A stretch of 64,000 bases of DNA from positions 23,373,504 through 23,437,503 of the forward strand of contig OZ037765.1 in NCBI GenBank assembly GCA_964035545.1. Reading direction: 5' to 3'. Source of the stretch: Bugula neritina (taxonomy: Eukaryota; Animalia; Bryozoa). The notes below the pieces were generated by a model. That model did not search any database. It was given only the letters and a program-made list of their open reading frames with translations, and had not been told where the DNA came from. Each line of letters begins with the position of its first letter. Position 1 is the first letter of the stretch. Shown here piece by piece: positions 2,476 to 31,100 of this stretch. Both the position numbers and the translations under genes were made by a program.

Positions 2476-4849
2476 TTAATGACTTTCACCAGCTTTTCCA
2501 GCTACTCTCTTAAAGTCGTTCATGTTGGTAGTGCTAACAGGTGTTCCTATGAAAGCTAAATGATCAATTTGGGTGGTCTCTTCTCCCCCTTGGTTGTCCT
2601 TCACAAACATGGTTACAGACTGAACGCTCTGAAACTTGACATACTTCAGATTGATCACACTGCCCTCCTTCATATCTTCTTCCGTCAAGGTGAGCTCCTG
2701 GACAGCTACCATACTTTCTGCAGAATCAAAGTCTGGAGCATTTGGCAGATTCAGGAAAAGCCTTACAGTCTTTGGAGCCTTTGGACCATCAGCAAGTATT
2801 CGTAGTGAATGCAGCTTCATCTGCTGGTTGAATGCAACAGTAATAATAAGTTGCTCATCTACATCTGACTCCAGAAACCCACCACCAGTTCCCCAAGCAT
2901 GTTCTAGTTTATGATCATCAGATTCATTAAGGCACTCTGATCCTGTTGCATCCATAAAGGAGTGCAGGTTCATCTGCCCTTTGGGTAGTGACTGACTGGC
3001 ACCATCACCAGCTTCATCAGCACCTGAAGATCCAGCTTCCGGCACAACAGTACTAGCCCACTTTCTTACCATGGCTGTAAGAGCTTCTGGGTTTGCACCT
3101 GAGTGAATAATTGAATAAGTTATTTGTATAATTTATCAGGATGGTTAATTACAGGAATAGTACTTGAATGTTGCTTGTTCGTAAAATGAGTCTAAAAATA
3201 TTGCAAGCAAGAGCAGTGTAACAGACATAATAGAGCATCATACAAAAAGGGAAGATAACTCTGAAAAGCTAGAATCTGAGTATAAAGACTATTTGGCATA
3301 AAGCTGGCCACCATAATAATATCTACACAGCCCAACTTTTAAGATATGATTGCCCAACTACAATATACTTGTGACAGACTATAAGAGAACTAGTGAATAT
3401 AATAAGTTGTAATCTACAATTTATCTCAATCAGATACAAAATGTATACATACAAAACAAGAAATGATCAAATGGTGGCAAAATGCCTCAGATAGGTAGAC
3501 ATTAAAGATATTTCAGGAAACAAATAAGATGAGAACAGTGCACTCTGCCAAAATACTAACACCATAAATTAATTGACTAAAACACAGTCAGGTTACTATA
3601 TCTCAGAAAAATCTTAGCATATGTACTGATAGAGCATATCAATATTGAGTAAAATACTCAGCCAGCAAGTTGCTGGCCCAGACTAAGCTAAGGAATTATG
3701 TCTAAAGTAAATCATAATTTCAAAAAACAGGATGCACAGTGGTTATTAGTCTAGACTCTAGACCAAAAGCAAAGCAAGACATCATAAAAACAAAAAGTCA
3801 GCTTTACAATATGTGAAGTATTACCTATTGTATATATTACTAGGCTAAGCATCAAAACGGTGGTTGTAGTAATTTGGATTATAATTTTGGAAGATTCTGA
3901 AAAAACTCAATGAATAGAAATTGGCACTATTAAATATTCTAGAAAAAGGTAGATCACCAATATTTTCAGCTTGCTATTTGGTTAGATGACAACAAAGTTT
4001 TCATTATAAGTTTCAATAATTGTTACTGGTTCAGTGTCACCGGCTGTGCTGAAAAAAACCTGTCAGACCTGATAGAAATTAGATAATGAACAAATCAATA
4101 CTAAGAATATTAACAAGAGAAAGAAACTCCCAATAACATTTGCTACATGTTAACGGTTACAATATGAATATTAGCTACATGGTTACTTTATATACTTATA
4201 ATATTTACTCTATAACATATATTTAATTTTATACTATTTTATTAATATTAGTATTACAACTACTATTGTCTATTAGTATCACTATTAATTATTATTTATT
4301 AGACTTAGTACTAATCACTATTACTATTAGTACTACCACTAGTATTAATATTATTATTAGTTTTATTTCAATTGGTATTGTCAATCATTACTGATTAACT
4401 TTAAGGTTGCCATTACAAATAATCAATTTACCTAAACTTGAACTCAAAGGTTAATAAACAGTCAAAAACTAAGATATTTGAAAGTTACTACTTACTAACA
4501 GTAACAGTAAGACTTAGACTAAGTCAAAGTGTAACAGTAACACTGGTTTAAATTTCAATTTGTGCCCACCTCTTATCTCATCTTGCTTTAAACGATTCTT
4601 GAAACACATAAACGTTGGCATCGCCGTCACAGTGTATCCTTGAGCAGTATCTTCTAATTTATCAACATCAACTTTCAAAAAGACTGCTTGACTAGAATAC
4701 TGATTGCTCAGCTGCTCAAACACAGGGGCTATGACTCTACATGGACCACACCATGTAGCAAAAAAGTCTACAAATACAGGCTTTGATGGACCAGCTTGCT
4801 GCAGCTTTTCAAGAAATTCTCTATCCTCTTCTAATTCTATGACTACCAT
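2476..4849 (-). CDS. TXNL1: Thioredoxin-like protein 1 (thioredoxin + PITH domain), 2 exons: 4849-4570, 3098-2476
   Basis: N-terminal thioredoxin with WCGPC. C-terminal PITH domain (ECLNESDDH, LESDVDEQLII, YVKFQSVQSVTMFVKDNQ, TNMNDFKRVAGKAGESH). A phase-1 GT-AG intron joins EIRG/ANPEAL in frame. Confidence 0.95.
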
Positions 4850-8371: not shown

Positions 8372-11300
8372 TCACTTGACATTTGTTGCTTTCAAACACT
8401 TTTTTGATGATCTGAGATGCTTAACTCTTTTCCCGCTACGACTTGATTGATCATGATCTTCTTTGCTTTGTTGATGCCGAATAGACAAATCTTTTGCTTC
8501 AAGTATTGGCGATGTCTTGGCAATATCGTTAGAATTATCTTTGTACGCGCCATTGCCAAAATTTTGAAGTGAATCTCCTGCTTCACCACCAATCGCTTTA
8601 CGTATTCCATTAGTTATTGTAGCATTCTCATTTTTAGATAAATCTATGAATTTAGCATTGCCAGCTACATCTTCTACTTTGACATTTGCAGGTGGCACAG
8701 TAACTCTACCAGTAGAGCGGCTGTTGTTTGTTTGGTAGGTGCTATAATCTCCACAGTTGGGCTGACTCATTTCTGAAGAACCTCTGTGAGAATTTTGACT
8801 AAGATCTGCTGGAGATGGAAATTCATTGCTTTGCAGTGAAATAATTGGAAATGAGGCTGGTGGTTCTCCTTGAATTGGTAACTCAAGTTGTTCATGAAAT
8901 ACCTATATAAGAGCATAATAATACCATACAGAAGATAATGAATTATTAATCTGTGAAATATAGGAAAATAAGTGAAACTACTTGTGTCCGTTTTAACTTT
9001 ACCTAATGATTTAATAAATGTATCTGATATTTATAATTCTTATTTTAATAATCACAAACTGTGATAACAAATACCAATTAGCAATGGTTATATGAGTCAT
9101 AATCTAAAACTTGATTATACAGTAAGTTAGCAATCTAATTTATTATTATGAAGAATATAAATCACCAATTATGTAGTGTTGACATTTTTGGGCTATTCAA
9201 CTGAAGATTTAAAGTGAATATAAAACTATAAAAACGTTCCATAAATTTATTTGGTCTACAATTAGTTTGCATACAAAATAATAATAATGTGCTGATGATA
9301 TTTTTAGTTTTTCACCCTATAACCAATTCATATAAACAAATGAAAAAAGAATAAAAGAAGTCTTACATCAGTTGCAGAGCCTTTGACAGTAGAAGCATAC
9401 ACTGATTCACAAGACCCTGTTGACGATGTTCTGAGCTCACTGCTTGACGCTTGTGTACCATTAGTAGGAGATGTTTGGTCGGTTTCTTCATCGCCTGAAA
9501 AATTGCCACACTCGAAAGGTTATTTTTATTATTAAATGAAAATTACACTATAGGTAGCAACAACCCAGTTAGTAGGCCAACACTATGTTCCCATGCTTCA
9601 AATAAACATTCTATTTAACAAAGCATGACCACGTAGTGTGAGAAACAATTGTTTATACCTGTTATTTTAAAAAGGAAACTAAGATCATAATTAAATTGTG
9701 TCTGTGGATATACATGTTAGCCTATATACATTTATGATTCATCAATGTGAGGCAATTTTCAATTATTCTTGAGTAACTTGAATTAAGAAACAAGAAACTA
9801 ATCGCTATGTGCATGTTCATATTTGTGAACTATGTTTTGTGAATAGCAAAATAATTTAAAAACTTGTGAAGAAAGTCACCTTTGATTCACAACTTCAAAA
9901 TTCCAGAATCATTTACAACTTTTTATCAAAAATGCAGAAAGAAAAAAAAGCTGGACATAGTATCATAAAGGATTGGTGCTAAAAATTGGGCATACTACTT
10001 TAATATATTATATATGGGTTGACATGTGAAGACAACCTTCTTGACTCCATGATGGATAGAAGAACGGTGAGTCAATTTTTTCTCCATTGGTAGGTAGGGC
10101 CCAGGAGGTAGGAGATGTCAAAGCAACTGAAGTTGGCATTGGAGAATAAGCTGGCAATATCCTGTAAGGATGAAAGCCATAGACATGAGCTGGTATGGCA
10201 GTGGTATTAGTTGGTGCCAATTGTTCAGCTACAAAATATAAACATGCAATTGATTTTTATTGTGCATGTGATTTAAATAAGCCGAATATTTTAGTTGAAC
10301 AAATTGTGACTTAAAATTTTAAAAAGTAGGAATAAAAAGTCCAAGCAGAAGAAAAAAAAATTATCTTATAACTGACAAACTATTTGACCAACAGCTTCAT
10401 AAATTAGTTTTTTGATAGCTTAATTCTGAGTGTAAAAGGACCTTGTGTGGTAACTGGTATTAAATGTAAAGCAAGTTGTAAGGCTATAAATCAACTTTCC
10501 CAAGCAATCTAGGTGCAATGGAATGAAATTTCGTGATAAACTTGTTGAGCAATTCTACGTGGTTTTAAGTCATAATCTTATAACTATATCACCTAAAATA
10601 TCATGTCTAGTTTAGTGCATCAAGCGATATTTTTAGTTTCATTGAATTTTTGACAGCACACGCCCTGCATTTAAACTGAAAAGGTACGTCGACTCAACAG
10701 ATGCCTTTAGTATTATGCTTGTAAGGGTAGCATATATAATGCATTTGAGTAAAGTCAGCCAGGCATTCTACTAGATGTATTATAATATAGATGTCCAATA
10801 AAACTAATACATTATATTAAATCTAATTTTTAATTTAAAAACCTGTTTAACAAAAGCTACTAAGAGTTAGTATTTCAATGATAACTAAGGCAAAGGTTGT
10901 TTATAATAACACACTAGTTTATACAGTCTAAGTTAACTAAAATGTTGTATTGAGCTAGAAATTTTGTGTCATCAGTGTAAAAAATTCTTTGATTTGTGAT
11001 TACCATACCATGATGATGGTGGTGGTGGTGATGGAAATGACGTGCATCGGATTGATTATGCTGTATTGTACCAATTGCTTGTTCAATTTCAGGCGAGGAT
11101 CTAGTGTTAATTTCTGGTTCAAATTGCTCAAAACCTTCACTATGCTCATGATTGTGTGCTATTACCGGAGCATACATTTTAGTTCCAGGGGCCGAGTTTT
11201 GATGATGAAAATGGCCATCCCCTCTAAAAAAGGGTAGGTATGGATGATGAGTGCCAGCTTTCATAGCTTTTCTTTTAGTTTTTACACCATTGAGTAATTC

Positions 11301-12011
11301 TGGTCGATCTTTCTTCATATGGCTATGACTGAACTCAAAGAATCCGTTATCTCGGATGCTCCATGAAAATCCATACTCTCTAAGAAGCCGGCGAAGATTT
11401 GCAAATGAATTAATTTGCACAAAACCAGGATATTTAGTCATTATACCATCTTCGTATTTTTTATCATCTACAACTATTGTATCGCCATTTTCTCCCCAAT
11501 ATAGCATATCATTAGTGTCATTTACAACTGCCCAAAACTTTTCTGGAAAACGAAGCAAGGTGTCAACTCTCAAATTTACTTTTCCATACGGAACAGGTTG
11601 TATCCAAGCTTTGCTTTGATTTGGAGAATTCTGTGCATGCCTAGAACTTCTTCTTCTAGGCTTAACAGGTTGCCCTATTGCCACTTGAATTGACTTTCTT
11701 TTTGTTCTTATGTCAAAAATTTGATTACGCTCACCCTTTTGAAATGAAGGATGAGAAAATTGAAATTCTCCAGTATCATTGTTTTGCCAATCAAAACTAT
11801 ACTCCCTGAGTAACCGTCGTAAATTTGCAAAGCTCGAAATCTGAACAAAGCCTGGATACTTTTCCATAATTTCTTGCTCATATTTATTGTCATCGACGAA
11901 AAATGATCGCCCATCTGAACTCCATCGAAATATGTCGCAATCATTATCGTTTACAACATCCCAAAGTTTGACTGGAAAGTGAGTGACATGCTCAAAATCG
12001 CGGTCTGTCAT
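8372..12011 (-). CDS. HSF-like transcription factor with two tandem HSF DNA-binding domains, about 617 aa. Exons 12011-11009, 10228-10037, 9494-9367, 8902-8372
   Basis: Two repeats of F-P-x-K-L/F-W-x-V-V-N-D...W...G..F/I.V.D...YPGFVQI.SFANLRRLLREY.F.W.....F.FSH......R......TKRK match the HSF winged-helix layout. Four GT-AG exons (1003+192+128+531 nt) join in frame. The start is assigned to the ATG at 12011; the ORF-track extension to 12170 looks non-coding. Confidence 0.85.
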
Positions 12012-15000
12012 ACTGCCAGCAAAACTTAATGGTGTGAGCAGCGACCATTTAAACGCAGCGTCGTACAATAGTAGCGTCTGCAAAGATAGCCTCGTTATCA
12101 GTAATTCTGCCGTTCTCAGTATTAATTCAATTTTTGAATTTATTTCTAAAGAAGTTATTTTAAATAACATTAATTAAAATTATTATTTCTAAAAATAAAA
12201 AATATATTTTGTGTAAGATTGTTATCGTCTTTCAGCTCTGTTTAAAAAGATGCGGCACAAGATTTACTATTGAGCAGAAAAAACAACTCCGTTTAAATAC
12301 CTGCATGGCTATCCTCAAGGCAGTATTATGAATCGGAGCAAAGGGCTATTTATGAAAAATTCCTCTCGATAAACTGTGGGAAGTTGTACTTCAGTTAAAC
12401 TTTAAAAAAAAACCGTTTTCATCACAACGTAAAATAAAAGGAGGTCATTCTTTAATGGCTACATTATCGTGCGAGTGGTTTTTCTTACGGAGAAAATAAC
12501 TCTAGCCAAGTACGTTCGGGATCAATTATTTTCGTCGCCAAAATTAATCTAGGGTGTTAGCATGCTATCTCCATGGGGCCAGCATTCATCTTTTTCTTGA
12601 TAAAGACTGATAACGTTCGCCAAGCGCTCACATAAATCGTCACTATCATATGACCAGCGCTAAGCTCGTTTTTGTCACACTAAGTCAATGTCAATGACTC
12701 AATCTGACTCTTTATCTCATAAATTTTAAGTTATACTATTATTTATGCTTGTAGACTTATTAATTTTAAGTCAATCTAATCCTATTAGTATGACTTATAA
12801 TTAGTTAAAGTCAAACATAATGATAATCACATTTTTGCAGATTTGTACTTGTAGACATAATTTAACTAATAACTTAACTCTTAAGTTGATGACAATGTTC
12901 ATTTTGATTATCATTATTTATATTATTTCATATTCGTTATGATTATTCATTATTATTAATATTATAATTATTCATTATTGTCATTTCGTATACTAAATCT
13001 AATAGCAATACTTAATCTTATAGTTGATATTATTGTCTATTGAGTTATACTAATACTTACAGCTACTCTTAGAGTTATTCTTATACTCTAGTTTAAGTTT
13101 AAGTTAATGTTATACAGTATAACTTATAGTTATAGTTACTCATACGCATACTATTGGTGTTATAATTATACTTATTAGTATAAATCATTAAATTTAATCT
13201 AATCATAATTATGGTAATAGCAAATTTGATATTAAATTTATTATTATAGTTTAAATTATTATTATATCTACACTTGTATTTTGGTCAAATGATTTATTTA
13301 TTATTTTATAGTTGTTGCTTAACAAATAATGTAATTTATTGTCATCTATAAGATCTATTTTCATTGCCATTATCATTATGATCATGTTGATGAGTGATGG
13401 TAAGAACCCACAAGTCGTTTCGTATACAAAATGGTCGTTTTTAACTAAAACTGCTGCCCATTTTGTACACAAAATGAATAGTGAATTTATCCACTAGATA
13501 ACTACTTGAATGATGCTAGTTTACTTATTTATTGCATGCCAGCATGCATGTTTCAGTGATTCACACCTTCCATTAATCAATATTTCAGATTATTCTATTA
13601 TGATAAGCGCGTTAATATTTTTATATAATTATTGAACATGCTACTACTTTTTGGTTTTATTTTATGGGCAGTACTGTATGGCCCATACATCAAGTAATAA
13701 ATAGATATAAAATATATGTGTTTTAATGTTTAGTTAATTTATATTGATGTGTATTAAAACGGCCTAACAAATGTGTCTCAAATGACTCGTGTACGGAATA
13801 ATCTAAACCCAGCCGAACCTAGTGGAACTTTGCACATATTAATATACGGCAAATATTATAATTTTAGTTCATTTATTTACTCTGGAATACTCATGTTTGG
13901 TTTTGTTACTTATAATAATACAAGCTATTCGCGTTGCTCTCACTCACCTATATAATTAATAATGTCCTTACATGTTAATGTAGTTAATATAACATTAATA
14001 TGGCTTTTCACTAGCAAATATATGGTAAATAATATATTTGCATGTAGTTCAAGAAAAATTATTGTGATATTTTTTTTATAAAGCTGCATACATTTTTCCT
14101 TCAAAAGTTGGATTTAGTAGCTCTAGCTCTAATTGCATTTACCTATCAATATCATCATTAAATAGTAGCATGTGTATTAAGTTTCAGGGAATGATTTTGG
14201 TATTTACAAACATAAAAGTAAGATATATTGATGGATCAGTTCAGCATTTTAGTTAATGGTTATTTTTATTACTTGAAAAAAGTCAGGTTGTCAGGAGTCT
14301 GTAAAAATTGTAATTGAGCTCATGGATCAATACATTAAATTGAAATAGCTGCTGAAGCAAATTTAATGTTTTAATAATGATAGTTGAATTATAATAAATA
14401 GCTTCAATCACCCTATGGTTTATTTAAGGCTAAAAATTGAAATGTAGCATTTGTTCAGTCTAATTTTTCAGTTCAGCCTTTATTTGATCATTGAAACTTA
14501 GGCAGTGTCAAAATTAAGTTTACAAATTTACTTACGTGAAATGATTGTACTAGAGTTTGTCTGAATGAAAATTTTATATGCCTTCAGCTGACAGATAGGC
14601 AATCAGAATTTTCACATTACTTTGACAAAAACAACAAGCCAATAATTTAACAAATCTATTTAAATGGGAAATTTTAGTGCACAAGCCACTAGTTGCTGGC
14701 AAGTAAATTTGTCAACATGACTGGGTGCCAGCTGTAATTATTATGAATACTTTTGTTTTCGATAAGAATCCTGACGAGAATGCTATTAAAGTTTTGAGTT
14801 CACTCACTTGTAAATGCTAGATTTGGTTAAAATAAGTATTGCATGTCACTAATGTTTAAATAAAAGCTTCTCATAACAATAAATTTCATGTAAACACATA
14901 AAAATTCACTTAAACTGTTTAATCTATTGTATAGAGCACGTAACCTTTTTTTGCACCAAGTTCCCATTATTTTGCATTATGCAAATAGATTTTTCATTCA

Positions 15001-28100: not shown

Positions 28101-31100
28101 TATCAGCTCACCAGAGCTCTATTTAAAGCTTCATTCTCGTCACTGGTACGCTGCAAAATGTCCGTTGTTTCTTGAAGGACATGAGTATGGTCCTCAGTCT
28201 TTCTTGTCAAGTCTTCCTGAAGTGCGCTGACTTCCTGCCTACTCGCATCGAGTGTTGTCTGCACTTCGCCCAGTTGCTGATCTGCAGATGCCAAGCTTTC
28301 TGTGAGAGAAGCTTTCTCCTTGGTTAGATCAGCATTAGTATTGCCTAAGCTCTGTTAAATGAACCATAAAAATATATAAGATATAAGTACAAAAAAGTTA
28401 AACTCATGTCTCACTAATCACTAAATCTTAATTATCTGCTGTTATTATGGGTAGTTTATATTTAGAATTAAAAAAAACTATAGAAGTACATATAGTTCAA
28501 AAGGTGCAGTGTGGAGTGAACCCTTAGCGCGTTCTAAATCGAGCATTCCATTTTTAAGGTTGGTCTAGTAGCACAAAGTATAAGGGCACTACACAAAATA
28601 AATTTTAAAAAGTGAAATGATTCATCAAGAAATTCATCATAAGTCAACATACTAACTTTTAGTTCACTCTGGAGGTTTTCAATATCGGCCTTGAATTTGC
28701 TAATTTCGGTTTGCTTTGTCTAAAGAAATAAAATAAATACAACAATATAACATATAACACACATACACACACATGTATAATATATATAATATATATAGCG
28801 TCATAATATTATAGCCCTAGCAGTGTGTCATAGGCATACACAGTTACCTCCTCGGCCAACTTGGCAGCTGATTGCATCAAATCAATTTGTTCTAATAAAG
28901 AGCTCTGCAAGTTCTCGCTCTCTTTGACCTAAAGTAAAGAACACTGGGTTAATAAAGCCCAAATAATCTGGAAATAATGCTACCAACATATTAAAGTGAT
29001 ATTACTGACTTTACAGTCAAGTCAAGCACCTTAGCTTCCATTTGCTGTTGTAGTTGGAGGAGGGTTGCATCCCTCTCGGAAACAAGTTTTCTAGAATCTT
29101 CTAACTCTCTAAAAGTGCCATTGAGCTGTGAAAGCTGATTGTTGGATTGTCCCTGCAGTTTTTCTGTTTCTTTTCCCAACATCACCTTTTCTTCCTCTAA
29201 GTTTCTAGCCTACAATAATGCACATAATATATTATTATAAAGCAAGAAAACATGAGTAATAAATTACATACAACATGTACCTAATAACTTGAATGCTCAT
29301 ATAATAAAGCAGAGTTATCTGCTCGTACCTAGTTCACAAAACTTAACCATCTAACAAACTTACATGTAAACATATTGATAATCTTTTATAGTATTTGACA
29401 AATATATTTTTAAGATACTAAATACCAAGTAATTATCCTGGGTTTATCTTCTATAACACACACAACTAAATCAAGTAGCTATCAATTCAACATTTCAATT
29501 TTTTTCAATAGAACTCAAAAAAAGACTCTAACATTGATTGATTGTAAGAGCATCTTAGCGTGAGCATTGCATGCTACCTACCACTAACTGCAGATCATTG
29601 TTTTCAGACTGTAACTGTGTATTATCAGCCACAGACTTAGAAAGCTGCTCCTTTACTGCTAGCAGCTGCTCGTTCAGCACAGCAGAATCATCTTGCAGCT
29701 GGGCAAGTGCAGACAACTTCTCTTGTAGCAATTCTTCAGAAGCCTTGAGATCTGACTCTAAGCCATTACACCTCTCCAACCAGCTTGCCTTGCTTCGCCC
29801 GTGTTCCTCAGTCTAAAATTAACAAATATTTATAGTTGAATACTTTCATTACAAAAGTCTAACACAATTTCCAGGAAAATAATATTCAATGATATTAAAA
29901 CCATCAGTCAAGCTTACAGCTTTCAAACTAAAACGAAACTCAAAGCAGGGTGCAGATTAATAGTAACATCTTACAAATGTTGACCACAATTCAAGCGCTT
30001 ATTTTATACACAAATTGACATACAACCCAAACTTCTAAACCATAAACTGCTCAACACTTAATCCTGCCTACACAAACACATGCTAGATATCGAGCATATT
30101 TATTTCAGACTCTTGTTGAACGAATATTAAATTCAACTGCAATAACCTCAGAAAGCAGAGATTGTTGGACAGTCACAAGCTCTGCCGTCTTCAACTCAGC
30201 CATGGCAGACATTTTAGTAAGTTGTTCCTTTAGACTGGAGACCTCATCACTTTTATCTGACAACTCCTCACTCATCTTCTTGTTGGTTTCCATAAGTTTG
30301 GAAACTTCAGAGCCTTTTTCTTCTAACTAAACAACAGAATGTTAAAACATAATTTATATTGCTATAATTTACTGTATCAAACAATGAACAATAACTGTGC
30401 CTTTCACAGGCTCACAATATAACACGCAAAAATATTGTGAAACGTTTACTACAAAACACTGTCGAGTATTTCTATACTAACTTGAGAGGAAAGCTGAGTT
30501 TTAGATTCATTTAAAGCTTGCAAATCCTGTATGTGTTGGGAGAGTTGAGTTTGAAGAGATGACAACTCTTGAGCTTGGTCATCAGCTTTCATAGAGGATT
30601 GAGTTAGTTCTGCTTGTTTGGCAGCAATGTCAGCATGCAGGCTGCGAATTGTATCTTCTTTCAACAATAAACTGGAATGCAACTGACTAACTGCTTCTTT
30701 GTGCTCATCACTCTATAAAATATACACTTTGTAAAAAGATATGTGTTAAATATGACTAAACATTCACAGCATAGCATTAAATATGACTACTAGAGTATAA
30801 AGTATAATGAAACAAATATTTATACAAAATATTTTAACTTTATGCAGTCAAGAAAAAGTCATCTTTTTATTTCATTCATTTTAAAACACATATTGGGAGA
30901 GATATTACTTGCGCTTCAAAGTAAATCTATAGACCTAAAACCAAGGTACTGCATTATTGTAGGCCGCAGTTTACTTTACTTATTATACAATATTTACTGA
31001 CATTAAAAGTAGGATCCTTGGCAATATTGACTGAGTTAACATACATAAACTTTACTAGTCACTATATACTGCATGTACTGTAACTCATTGACTTTACTAT

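Follow-up and report, generated by a model that had tools for sequence, protein, structure and literature searches.

Heat shock factors (HSFs) are the textbook factor whose DNA affinity and site choice derive from trimerisation. In the 64,000-nucleotide stretch of Bugula neritina DNA analysed here (contig OZ037765.1, positions 23,373,504 to 23,437,503; hereafter, the window), the longest open reading frame (ORF), located at 10914-12170 on the minus strand and 418 amino acids (aa) long, encodes two HSF-type domains in tandem. The question raised by this locus is whether it is a genuine gene and, if so, where its peculiar layout comes from and how its product might read DNA. An initial annotation had proposed a lineage-specific HSF class in which a covalent pair of DNA-binding domains (DBDs) replaces trimerisation and a rewritten recognition helix reads a motif that differs from the HSE (heat shock element). 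In this work, we describe a transcribed, spliced and strongly constrained gene encoding two genuine HSF-type winged-helix DBDs in one polypeptide, and we argue from alignments and phylogeny that its variant helix is a trait of a wider subfamily and not an innovation of the tandem gene.

Two HSF-type domains encoded by one spliced gene

The translation of 11268-11981 (minus strand) contains two HSF-type repeats, each with the core YPGFVQI[SN]SFANLRRLLREY[SG]F[DS]W, so that the shared core first read from the letters was confirmed; BLASTP aligns one repeat with the other over 100 aa at 52% identity (E 2e-36). All searches, heptad screens and fold predictions reported below were run on single exons. 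The Pfam profile PF00447 (HSF_DNA-bind) matched both domains (DBD1 and DBD2, hereafter D1 and D2), D1 scoring 48.9 bits and D2 43.4 bits (the gathering cut-off is 22), and each match spans profile positions 1-99/100. Sequence matches of the repeats in the PDB are the DBDs of HSF2, HSF1 and HSF4, whereas an HSF5 chain matched residues 1-40 only and more weakly than HSF1/2/4 (E 0.0014). The AlphaFold2 (AF2) model, for which ten orthologues served as input, gives both domains the topology H-E-E-H-H-E-E (alpha1-beta1-beta2-alpha2-alpha3-beta3-beta4) with a block pLDDT of mostly 69-92. Its top Foldseek matches are the DBDs of HSF2, HSF1, HSF4, HSF5 and Skn7 (TM by target 0.8-0.86, root-mean-square deviation about 2 Å), which bears out the HSF fold for which structure prediction had been suggested as a check. 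In the ESM Atlas, the look-alikes were confined to generic HSF-domain clusters of protist and plant origin, and Pfam searches of exons 2-4 and of the exon-1 tail gave no significant match.

The two domains are joined by a basic linker of 47 aa, close to the 45 aa or so first estimated, in which AF2 residues 113-150 have a pLDDT below 50 and appear disordered (roughly 35 residues). In order, it carries a bipartite motif resembling a nuclear localisation signal, KRK-x10-KPRRR, followed by the conserved SKAW.QP and VNLRVDTL motifs, and its length varies by only 1-2 aa among the orthologues.

The gene model (Table 1) was derived from RNA-library contigs mapped on window positions 9000-14000, together with orthologue alignments. 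A 2,086-nucleotide contig from run X7 maps in pieces at 12091-11043, unbroken across both domains, at 10229-10036 and at 9493-9364, and then runs onward with a loose end at 8870-8899, within exon 4; the same joints are present in contigs of runs X9 and X10/X11, which come from other studies. The three introns are all GT..AG and the frame is preserved throughout, giving four exons and 617 codons that end in a TGA stop codon at 8374-8372 (minus strand). The starts of the orthologues place the beginning of the coding sequence at the ATG at 12011 and not at 12170, and the RNA contig continues for 80 nucleotides upstream of this ATG without a joint. The last 32 aa of the window ORF (MVITNQ...CIN, 11008-10914) are a read-through of intron 1, and the gene-caller proteins of the orthologues diverge exactly at the boundary of this intron. 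Consequently, the tail is of low complexity as first described, but its final part was intron sequence, and the real C-terminal half is Pro/Ser/Thr/Asn-rich and longer than the tail of the ORF. In a close relative, the DNA contig L005 retains the same introns and is collinear with the window over 5.9 kb at 90.9% identity; since this DNA contig contains the introns, the intron-less contigs are RNA-derived. In the RNA-covered 5' leader, an upstream ATG in another frame (12046-12048, minus strand) opens an 18-codon upstream ORF that runs across the main start codon and ends shortly past it.

Comparison with relatives showed strong purifying selection on the gene. Between exon 1 and its counterpart in L005, there are 34 synonymous differences and a single nonsynonymous one over 334 codons (dN/dS 0.006), in agreement with the third codon positions holding 29 of the 31 differences among those listed in the read and contig mapping. 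Conservation in L005 amounts to 100% for exons 2 and 3 and 92.6% for exon 4; exon 2 is weakly conserved in the orthologues L001-L004. Relative to the distant orthologue L001, dS is saturated, and the dN values are 0.165 (D1), 0.132 (D2), 0.53 (linker) and 0.61 (tail). Residues N63-F73, at the D1 helix, do not vary across the orthologues, and unvarying columns are also found in the tail (H256-L259, E308, Q311, A312 and I316), whose motifs HHPYLP and QAIGTIQ are confined to the tandem orthologues. Transcription and strong selection, on which the initial annotation had made its proposal depend, were thus both found.

A word search retrieved seven two-DBD orthologues, 55-98% identical, all of them located in assemblies of metagenomes or runs. 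When 1.84 billion representative proteins were searched with a profile, only two full-length matches emerged, at about 510 bits, below which the scores drop to 125 bits and to single-domain proteins. In its own genome, the tandem gene is single copy and is the sole locus with the variant helix. The tandem layout is therefore lineage-restricted and confined to one narrow orthogroup. Downstream of the orthologue in the metagenome contig L001 (10145-10330), and at matching places in L002 and L003, there is a fragment with a weak amine-oxidase match; tblastx of the first 22 kb of the window found no conserved block matching it, so that synteny with the distant orthologue is seen for the gene only.

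Table 1. Features of the tandem HSF-type gene (window positions)
Feature	Positions	Strand	Description and evidence
Start codon ATG	12009..12011	-	Start shared by all seven orthologues, 11 aa before DBD1
Exon 1, coding part	11009..12011	-	334 codons and one base, from the N-terminus through both DBDs and their linker to the tail motifs and His tract; orthologue alignments
DBD1	11703..11978	-	Residues 12-103; PF00447 48.9 bits; AF2 block pLDDT 74-92; Foldseek HSF2/HSF1 DBDs
DBD1 recognition helix FANLRRLLREY	11799..11831	-	Residues 61-71; AF2 helix 61-70; L-INS-i alignment
Linker	11553..11693	-	Residues 107-153, 47 aa, basic; between DBD1 and DBD2
DBD2	11274..11549	-	Residues 155-246; PF00447 43.4 bits; AF2 topology; D2 clade support 98
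DBD2 recognition helix FANLRRLLREY	11373..11405	-	Residues 203-213; AF2 helix 203-212; near-invariant in orthologues
Exon-1 tail	11009..11267	-	HHPYLP and RSSPEI.QAIGTIQ motifs, then His tract up to splice donor
Intron 1	10229..11008	-	GT..AG; GT donor 11008-11007; RNA contigs join about 11010 to 10229
Exon 2	10037..10228	-	Pro/Thr/Ser-rich; ends with conserved SPFFYPSWSQE-like motif; RNA contig joint 9493/10036
Exon 3	9367..9494	-	Ser/Thr-rich, acidic; RNA contig pieces 9364-9493
Exon 4, coding part	8372..8902	-	176 codons, Ser/Asn-rich; basic C-terminal KRVKHLRSSKK; AG at 8904-8903

Upstream of the gene, positions 12841-13842 attract very many contigs that are 90-95% alike, with a summed depth of up to 354 and many joints and loose ends, and look like a dispersed repeat family. 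The canonical HSE has one match in the window, at 29089, which is chance level.

A variant helix and a missing coil shared with single-domain relatives

In the L-INS-i alignment, N-L-R-R-L-L-R-E-Y-[SG]-F of the tandem gene stands against the canonical S-F-V-R-Q-L-N-x-Y-G-F and is preceded by a 3-4-aa insert (PGF) relative to canonical DBDs. The AF2 model agrees with this register, its helix 61-70 ending just before Y71, and HMMER aligned D2 in the same manner and D1 otherwise, with low posterior probability. R66 and R208 align with the invariant Arg of SFVRQLN (L-INS-i, HMMER), which is retained in every sequence, and the canonical L, Y and F of the helix are retained as well. The substitutions are S to N, F to L, V to R, Q to L, N to R and M to E, so that the canonical Asn position is occupied by Arg in both helices; the basal helix of the subfamily described below, NFRRQLREYGF, departs from the canonical one at 4 of 11 positions. 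Judging from these alignments, the helix is modified, and the term "rewritten" is too strong. The invariant Arg (R71 in HSF1, R63 in HSF2) makes bidentate hydrogen bonds to the G of GAA and is the main source of specificity, and the Asn (N74/N66) contacts the base preceding GAA through water (PMC8379338). TTC/GAA units are read by HSF-type domains of different kingdoms, which vary mainly in how these units are arranged (PMC11267843). The most economical prediction is that the tandem domains recognise a GAA-like core with an altered flank preference.

The same helix was found in a large set of single-DBD proteins that share the core YPGFVQI..F.N[LF]RR[LQ][LFM]REY.F.W with the tandem gene. At least 90 clusters carry it, and all 90 other representatives have one domain; members include proteins of gastropods (Nucella, Littorina and Pomacea), bivalves (Pinctada and Crassostrea virginica), cephalopods (Octopus and Argonauta) and an annelid (Ridgeia); all are labelled hypothetical, uncharacterised or "HSF-type DNA-binding domain-containing". 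A word search starting from the basal member P0088 gave four matches. No paper on this subfamily or on its named mollusc loci was found in the open-access literature.

A maximum-likelihood tree was built from 118 domains, comprising the 90 single-domain representatives, all D1 and D2 domains and comparison DBDs. The domains with the variant helix form a clade of 104 (SH-aLRT 100, stem 1.2) within which D1 and D2 are nested, each being monophyletic with a support of 98. The DBD phylogeny suggested at the outset accordingly gave a divided answer: the tandem domains lie outside the HSF5-like DBDs but group with an existing variant-helix subfamily. Likewise, of the lineage-specific class that had been proposed, the restricted tandem layout stands, but the helix and the coil-less state are shared with the mollusc and annelid subfamily. 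The identity of the helices of D1 and D2, which had been taken as a sign of selection on a new specificity, therefore reflects subfamily-wide constraint. Within the clade, D1 and D2 group as sisters, with a support of 80 in one run and 84 in another, and have a single derived residue in common; the best reading of this topology is a single internal duplication of the DBD before the divergence of the seven orthologues, although the two DBDs may instead derive from the fusion of two paralogues.

The absence of a heptad coil, as first noted, was confirmed with our own simple heptad screen (not COILS or MARCOIL), which scores 28-residue Pro-free windows for hydrophobic a/d positions. The heptad run was 0 in every exon of the tandem gene, compared with runs of 80-83 residues directly after the DBD in the canonical HSF controls and 41 in a plant HSF, and the stretches free of Pro and Gly outside the DBDs reach 24 aa at most. 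Within the single-DBD subfamily, 77 of 80 members lack a heptad run and 3 of 80 reach at least 35, each far from the DBD; since these members generally lack it, the coil was already absent before the duplication. Fish HSF5-like proteins also gave a run of 0 in this screen, and vertebrate HSF5 is devoid of HR-A/B (PMC11059408).

The genome also retains a canonical HSF gene on the same chromosome (about 6243600-6245550), whose exons (L017:1114-1197, 1519-1623 and 2895-3059) encode SVPAFLKKL..., ...KYFKHNNLASFVRQLNM (an intron splits the helix) and a heptad segment alignable with the HR-A/B of canonical HSFs. Because the subfamily is coil-less and a canonical HSF has been retained, the tandem does not appear to have replaced trimerisation in this gene, and the claim to that effect is doubtful. 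Canonical-helix HSF DBDs interrupted by in-frame TAA/TAG codons were also found on the small contigs C142, C173, C35, C178, C305, C33 and C306 (loci L006-L015), where the stops fall in otherwise continuous domains. Such stops suggest a ciliate-type genetic code and, possibly, epibiont or contaminant contigs; GC content (0.27-0.33) fails to separate these contigs from the host.

Comparison with canonical, HSF5-type and multi-domain HSFs

The tandem protein shares with canonical HSF1, HSF2 and HSF4, and with yeast and plant HSFs, the DBD fold, the Pfam family, the Arg of helix 3, the Y-G/S-F that follows the helix and a basic KRK at the end of the domain. It differs from them in its short wing loop and in the altered helix NLRRLLREY[SG]F, and, whereas canonical HSFs have one DBD directly before a 40-80-residue HR-A/B trimer coil, it has two DBDs and no coil. 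With HSF5, it has in common the lack of HR-A/B and an N-terminal FP.KLW start of the DBD. However, HSF5-type domains have the canonical SF[IV]RQLN helix and a long insert before it, in contrast to the 3-4 aa inserted here, and fish HSF5-like DBDs fall outside the variant-helix clade (stem support 100). HSF5 itself is meiosis-specific and functions independently of the heat-shock response, with a preference for a single GAA triplet (PMC11059408). According to a review, high-confidence orthologues of HSFY/HSFX are known from mammals only. The closest likeness is to the single-DBD proteins of molluscs and annelids (for instance, Pomacea PVD30299.1, Crassostrea virginica XP_022326943.1 and Ridgeia KAK2182127.1), which have the same core, an N-terminal DBD, a low-complexity tail and no coil, but only one DBD and neither of the tail motifs HHPYLP and QAIGTIQ.

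Several HSF domains in one chain are not exclusive to this gene and occur also in catfish, diatoms, a brown alga and oomycetes. Six domains, confirmed by Pfam, are present in Thraustotheca clavata OQR91341.1 (P0120), five in an MMETSP protist transcript and three, four and six in metagenome proteins (Pfam-confirmed); proteins with two each occur in Aphanomyces (P0164), Nitzschia (P0174/P0181) and Choristocarpus (P0205), in catfish RefSeq models named "heat shock factor protein 5-like" (P0168, P0247 and P0248) and in one UniParc protein. All of them have canonical-type helices. The stramenopile proteins, uncharacterised and with several DBDs per chain, differ from the tandem gene in their helices (SFQRQLN, SFRRQL) and longer spacers, and the duplication in catfish, where D1 and D2 are nearly identical, is an independent and recent one. 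Since the tree joins the domains of each multi-DBD protein to one another, those of fish and stramenopiles appear to be independent duplications, although some of these proteins could be fusions in the gene models. Hence, the tandem gene has no full-length match beyond its orthologues among the 1.84 billion representatives, but a tandem of HSF DBDs as such is not unique to it. No paper on a tandem or multi-DBD HSF architecture was found in the open-access literature.

Possible modes of DNA recognition and their significance

Taken together, these results make it rather probable, in our view, that this functional four-exon gene encodes a nuclear, sequence-specific factor of the HSF superfamily which, as a two-domain monomer, reads two GAA-like half-sites. 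We infer monomeric two-site binding, the GAA-like core and nuclear import from sequence. After the DBD had been duplicated within the gene, before the seven orthologues diverged, the monomer would bind DNA with the helix of each domain entering a major groove, where R66 and R208 would each read the guanine of a GAA-like unit. The two units would be read together, tethering giving the avidity that canonical HSFs gain by trimerising, and the flexible linker would set a loose limit on their spacing and orientation. That the TTC/GAA unit is kept across kingdoms while its arrangement varies (PMC11267843) is in keeping with this view. The extra arginines at the canonical V and N positions probably alter flank preference or backbone affinity, KRK-x10-KPRRR is probably the nuclear localisation signal, and the low-complexity exons 2-4, together with the tail motifs HHPYLP and RSSPEI.QAIGTIQ and the His tract, probably form the regulatory or activation part. 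Two linked units of the helix-turn-helix type that read adjacent sub-sites in one chain, as a monomer, are well known from the Myb R2R3, POU and paired domains. The analogy is mechanistic, as those folds are unrelated and their units read different sub-sites, whereas the two HSF helices are identical.

Several observations weigh against this reading. The GAA-like core is deduced from one conserved Arg only, and the changes V to R, Q to L and N to R, the last affecting the base-contacting Asn, mean that the preferred unit could differ. With a pTM of 0.49, the AF2 model does not place the two domains reliably relative to each other. A monomer is not assured either, as HSF5 oligomerises via another region despite having no HR-A/B (PMC11059408). 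As regards its origin and expression, the sister grouping of D1 and D2 relies on the 80-84 support and the single derived residue mentioned above, and the RNA status of the runs is guessed, the case for transcription resting on the contigs being intron-less.

Against this background, the proposal from which we started, namely a lineage-specific class whose tandem DBD replaces trimerisation and whose newly rewritten helix reads a non-HSE motif, seems unlikely as a whole. It can draw on the restriction of the tandem to a narrow orthogroup, on the missing coil, on three changed helix positions that include the Asn contacting the base 5' of GAA, and on coil-less HSF5, which binds a motif unlike the typical HSE (PMC11059408). 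However, the helix and the coil-less state, being common to at least 90 single-DBD mollusc and annelid clusters, are both older than the duplication, the Arg that reads GAA is kept, the genome still has a canonical HSF with its heptad region, and tandem HSF DBDs with canonical helices exist elsewhere. Even less likely, we consider, is an oligomer held together by the low-complexity or His-rich regions, which would present at least four DBDs to long repeat arrays (satellite-like GAA) in a chromatin or germline role. Its precedent is HSF5, which forms dimers, trimers and higher oligomers through a non-DBD region and acts in meiosis (PMC11059408), and the His tract and the conserved tail motifs would suit it, as would the mollusc HSF-like genes annotated as "HSFY" that are testis hubs (PMC9716669), provided that the Mulinia gene belongs to this subfamily. 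Nevertheless, no oligomerisation motif was detected, and exons 2-4 are Pro/Gly/Ser-rich.

A division of labour in which one domain binds DNA and the other is a protein-interaction or autoinhibitory module is improbable: D1 and D2 do show consistent differences away from the helix, for instance between the wing regions NNDTGEFQFSHPSF and IRDNGFFEFSHSHM or between KLWDVV and KFWAVV, and D1 evolves a little faster (dN 0.165, compared with 0.132), but the same helix, invariant Arg and C-terminal TKRK are kept by both domains, which are constrained with equal strength in all orthologues. That the ORF is an artefact, made of two adjacent genes, a decaying duplicate or a neutral pseudogene, has next to no probability, its sole point being that gene callers misread the 3' end through the intron. 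The frame is uninterrupted, a single RNA contig spans both domains and splices onward, dN/dS is 0.006 and the layout is kept in seven orthologues down to 55% identity. Being single-copy, spliced and strongly constrained, the locus is also not a domain borne by a transposable element, and a pseudogene or a fusion of neighbouring genes was rejected on the same grounds. Beyond the two-domain monomer on GAA-like half-sites, which remains our preferred reading, a bolder version can be put forward as a tentative possibility: an undescribed coil-less class of animal HSF-like factors whose extra arginines would confer a non-HSE half-site or spacing rule, in which the tandem protein would act as a natural single-chain dimer on a bipartite site and, alongside the multi-domain HSFs that arose separately in catfish, diatoms, brown algae and oomycetes, would mark domain chaining as a recurrent alternative to the coil.

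None of this overturns what is established about HSFs, and the practical value of the gene is modest pending its binding motif and expression pattern. The analysis brings to light a large HSF-like subfamily of molluscs, annelids and bryozoans with a modified helix, and indicates that multi-DBD HSF proteins arose several times. A constrained, coil-less protein with two HSF domains offers a simple system in which to study how domain number and tethering set site architecture. Should the bolder version hold true, the covalent chaining of domains would be a recurrent evolutionary alternative to coiled-coil oligomerisation in the HSF family, and the tandem protein would occupy a bipartite site that no trimeric HSF does.

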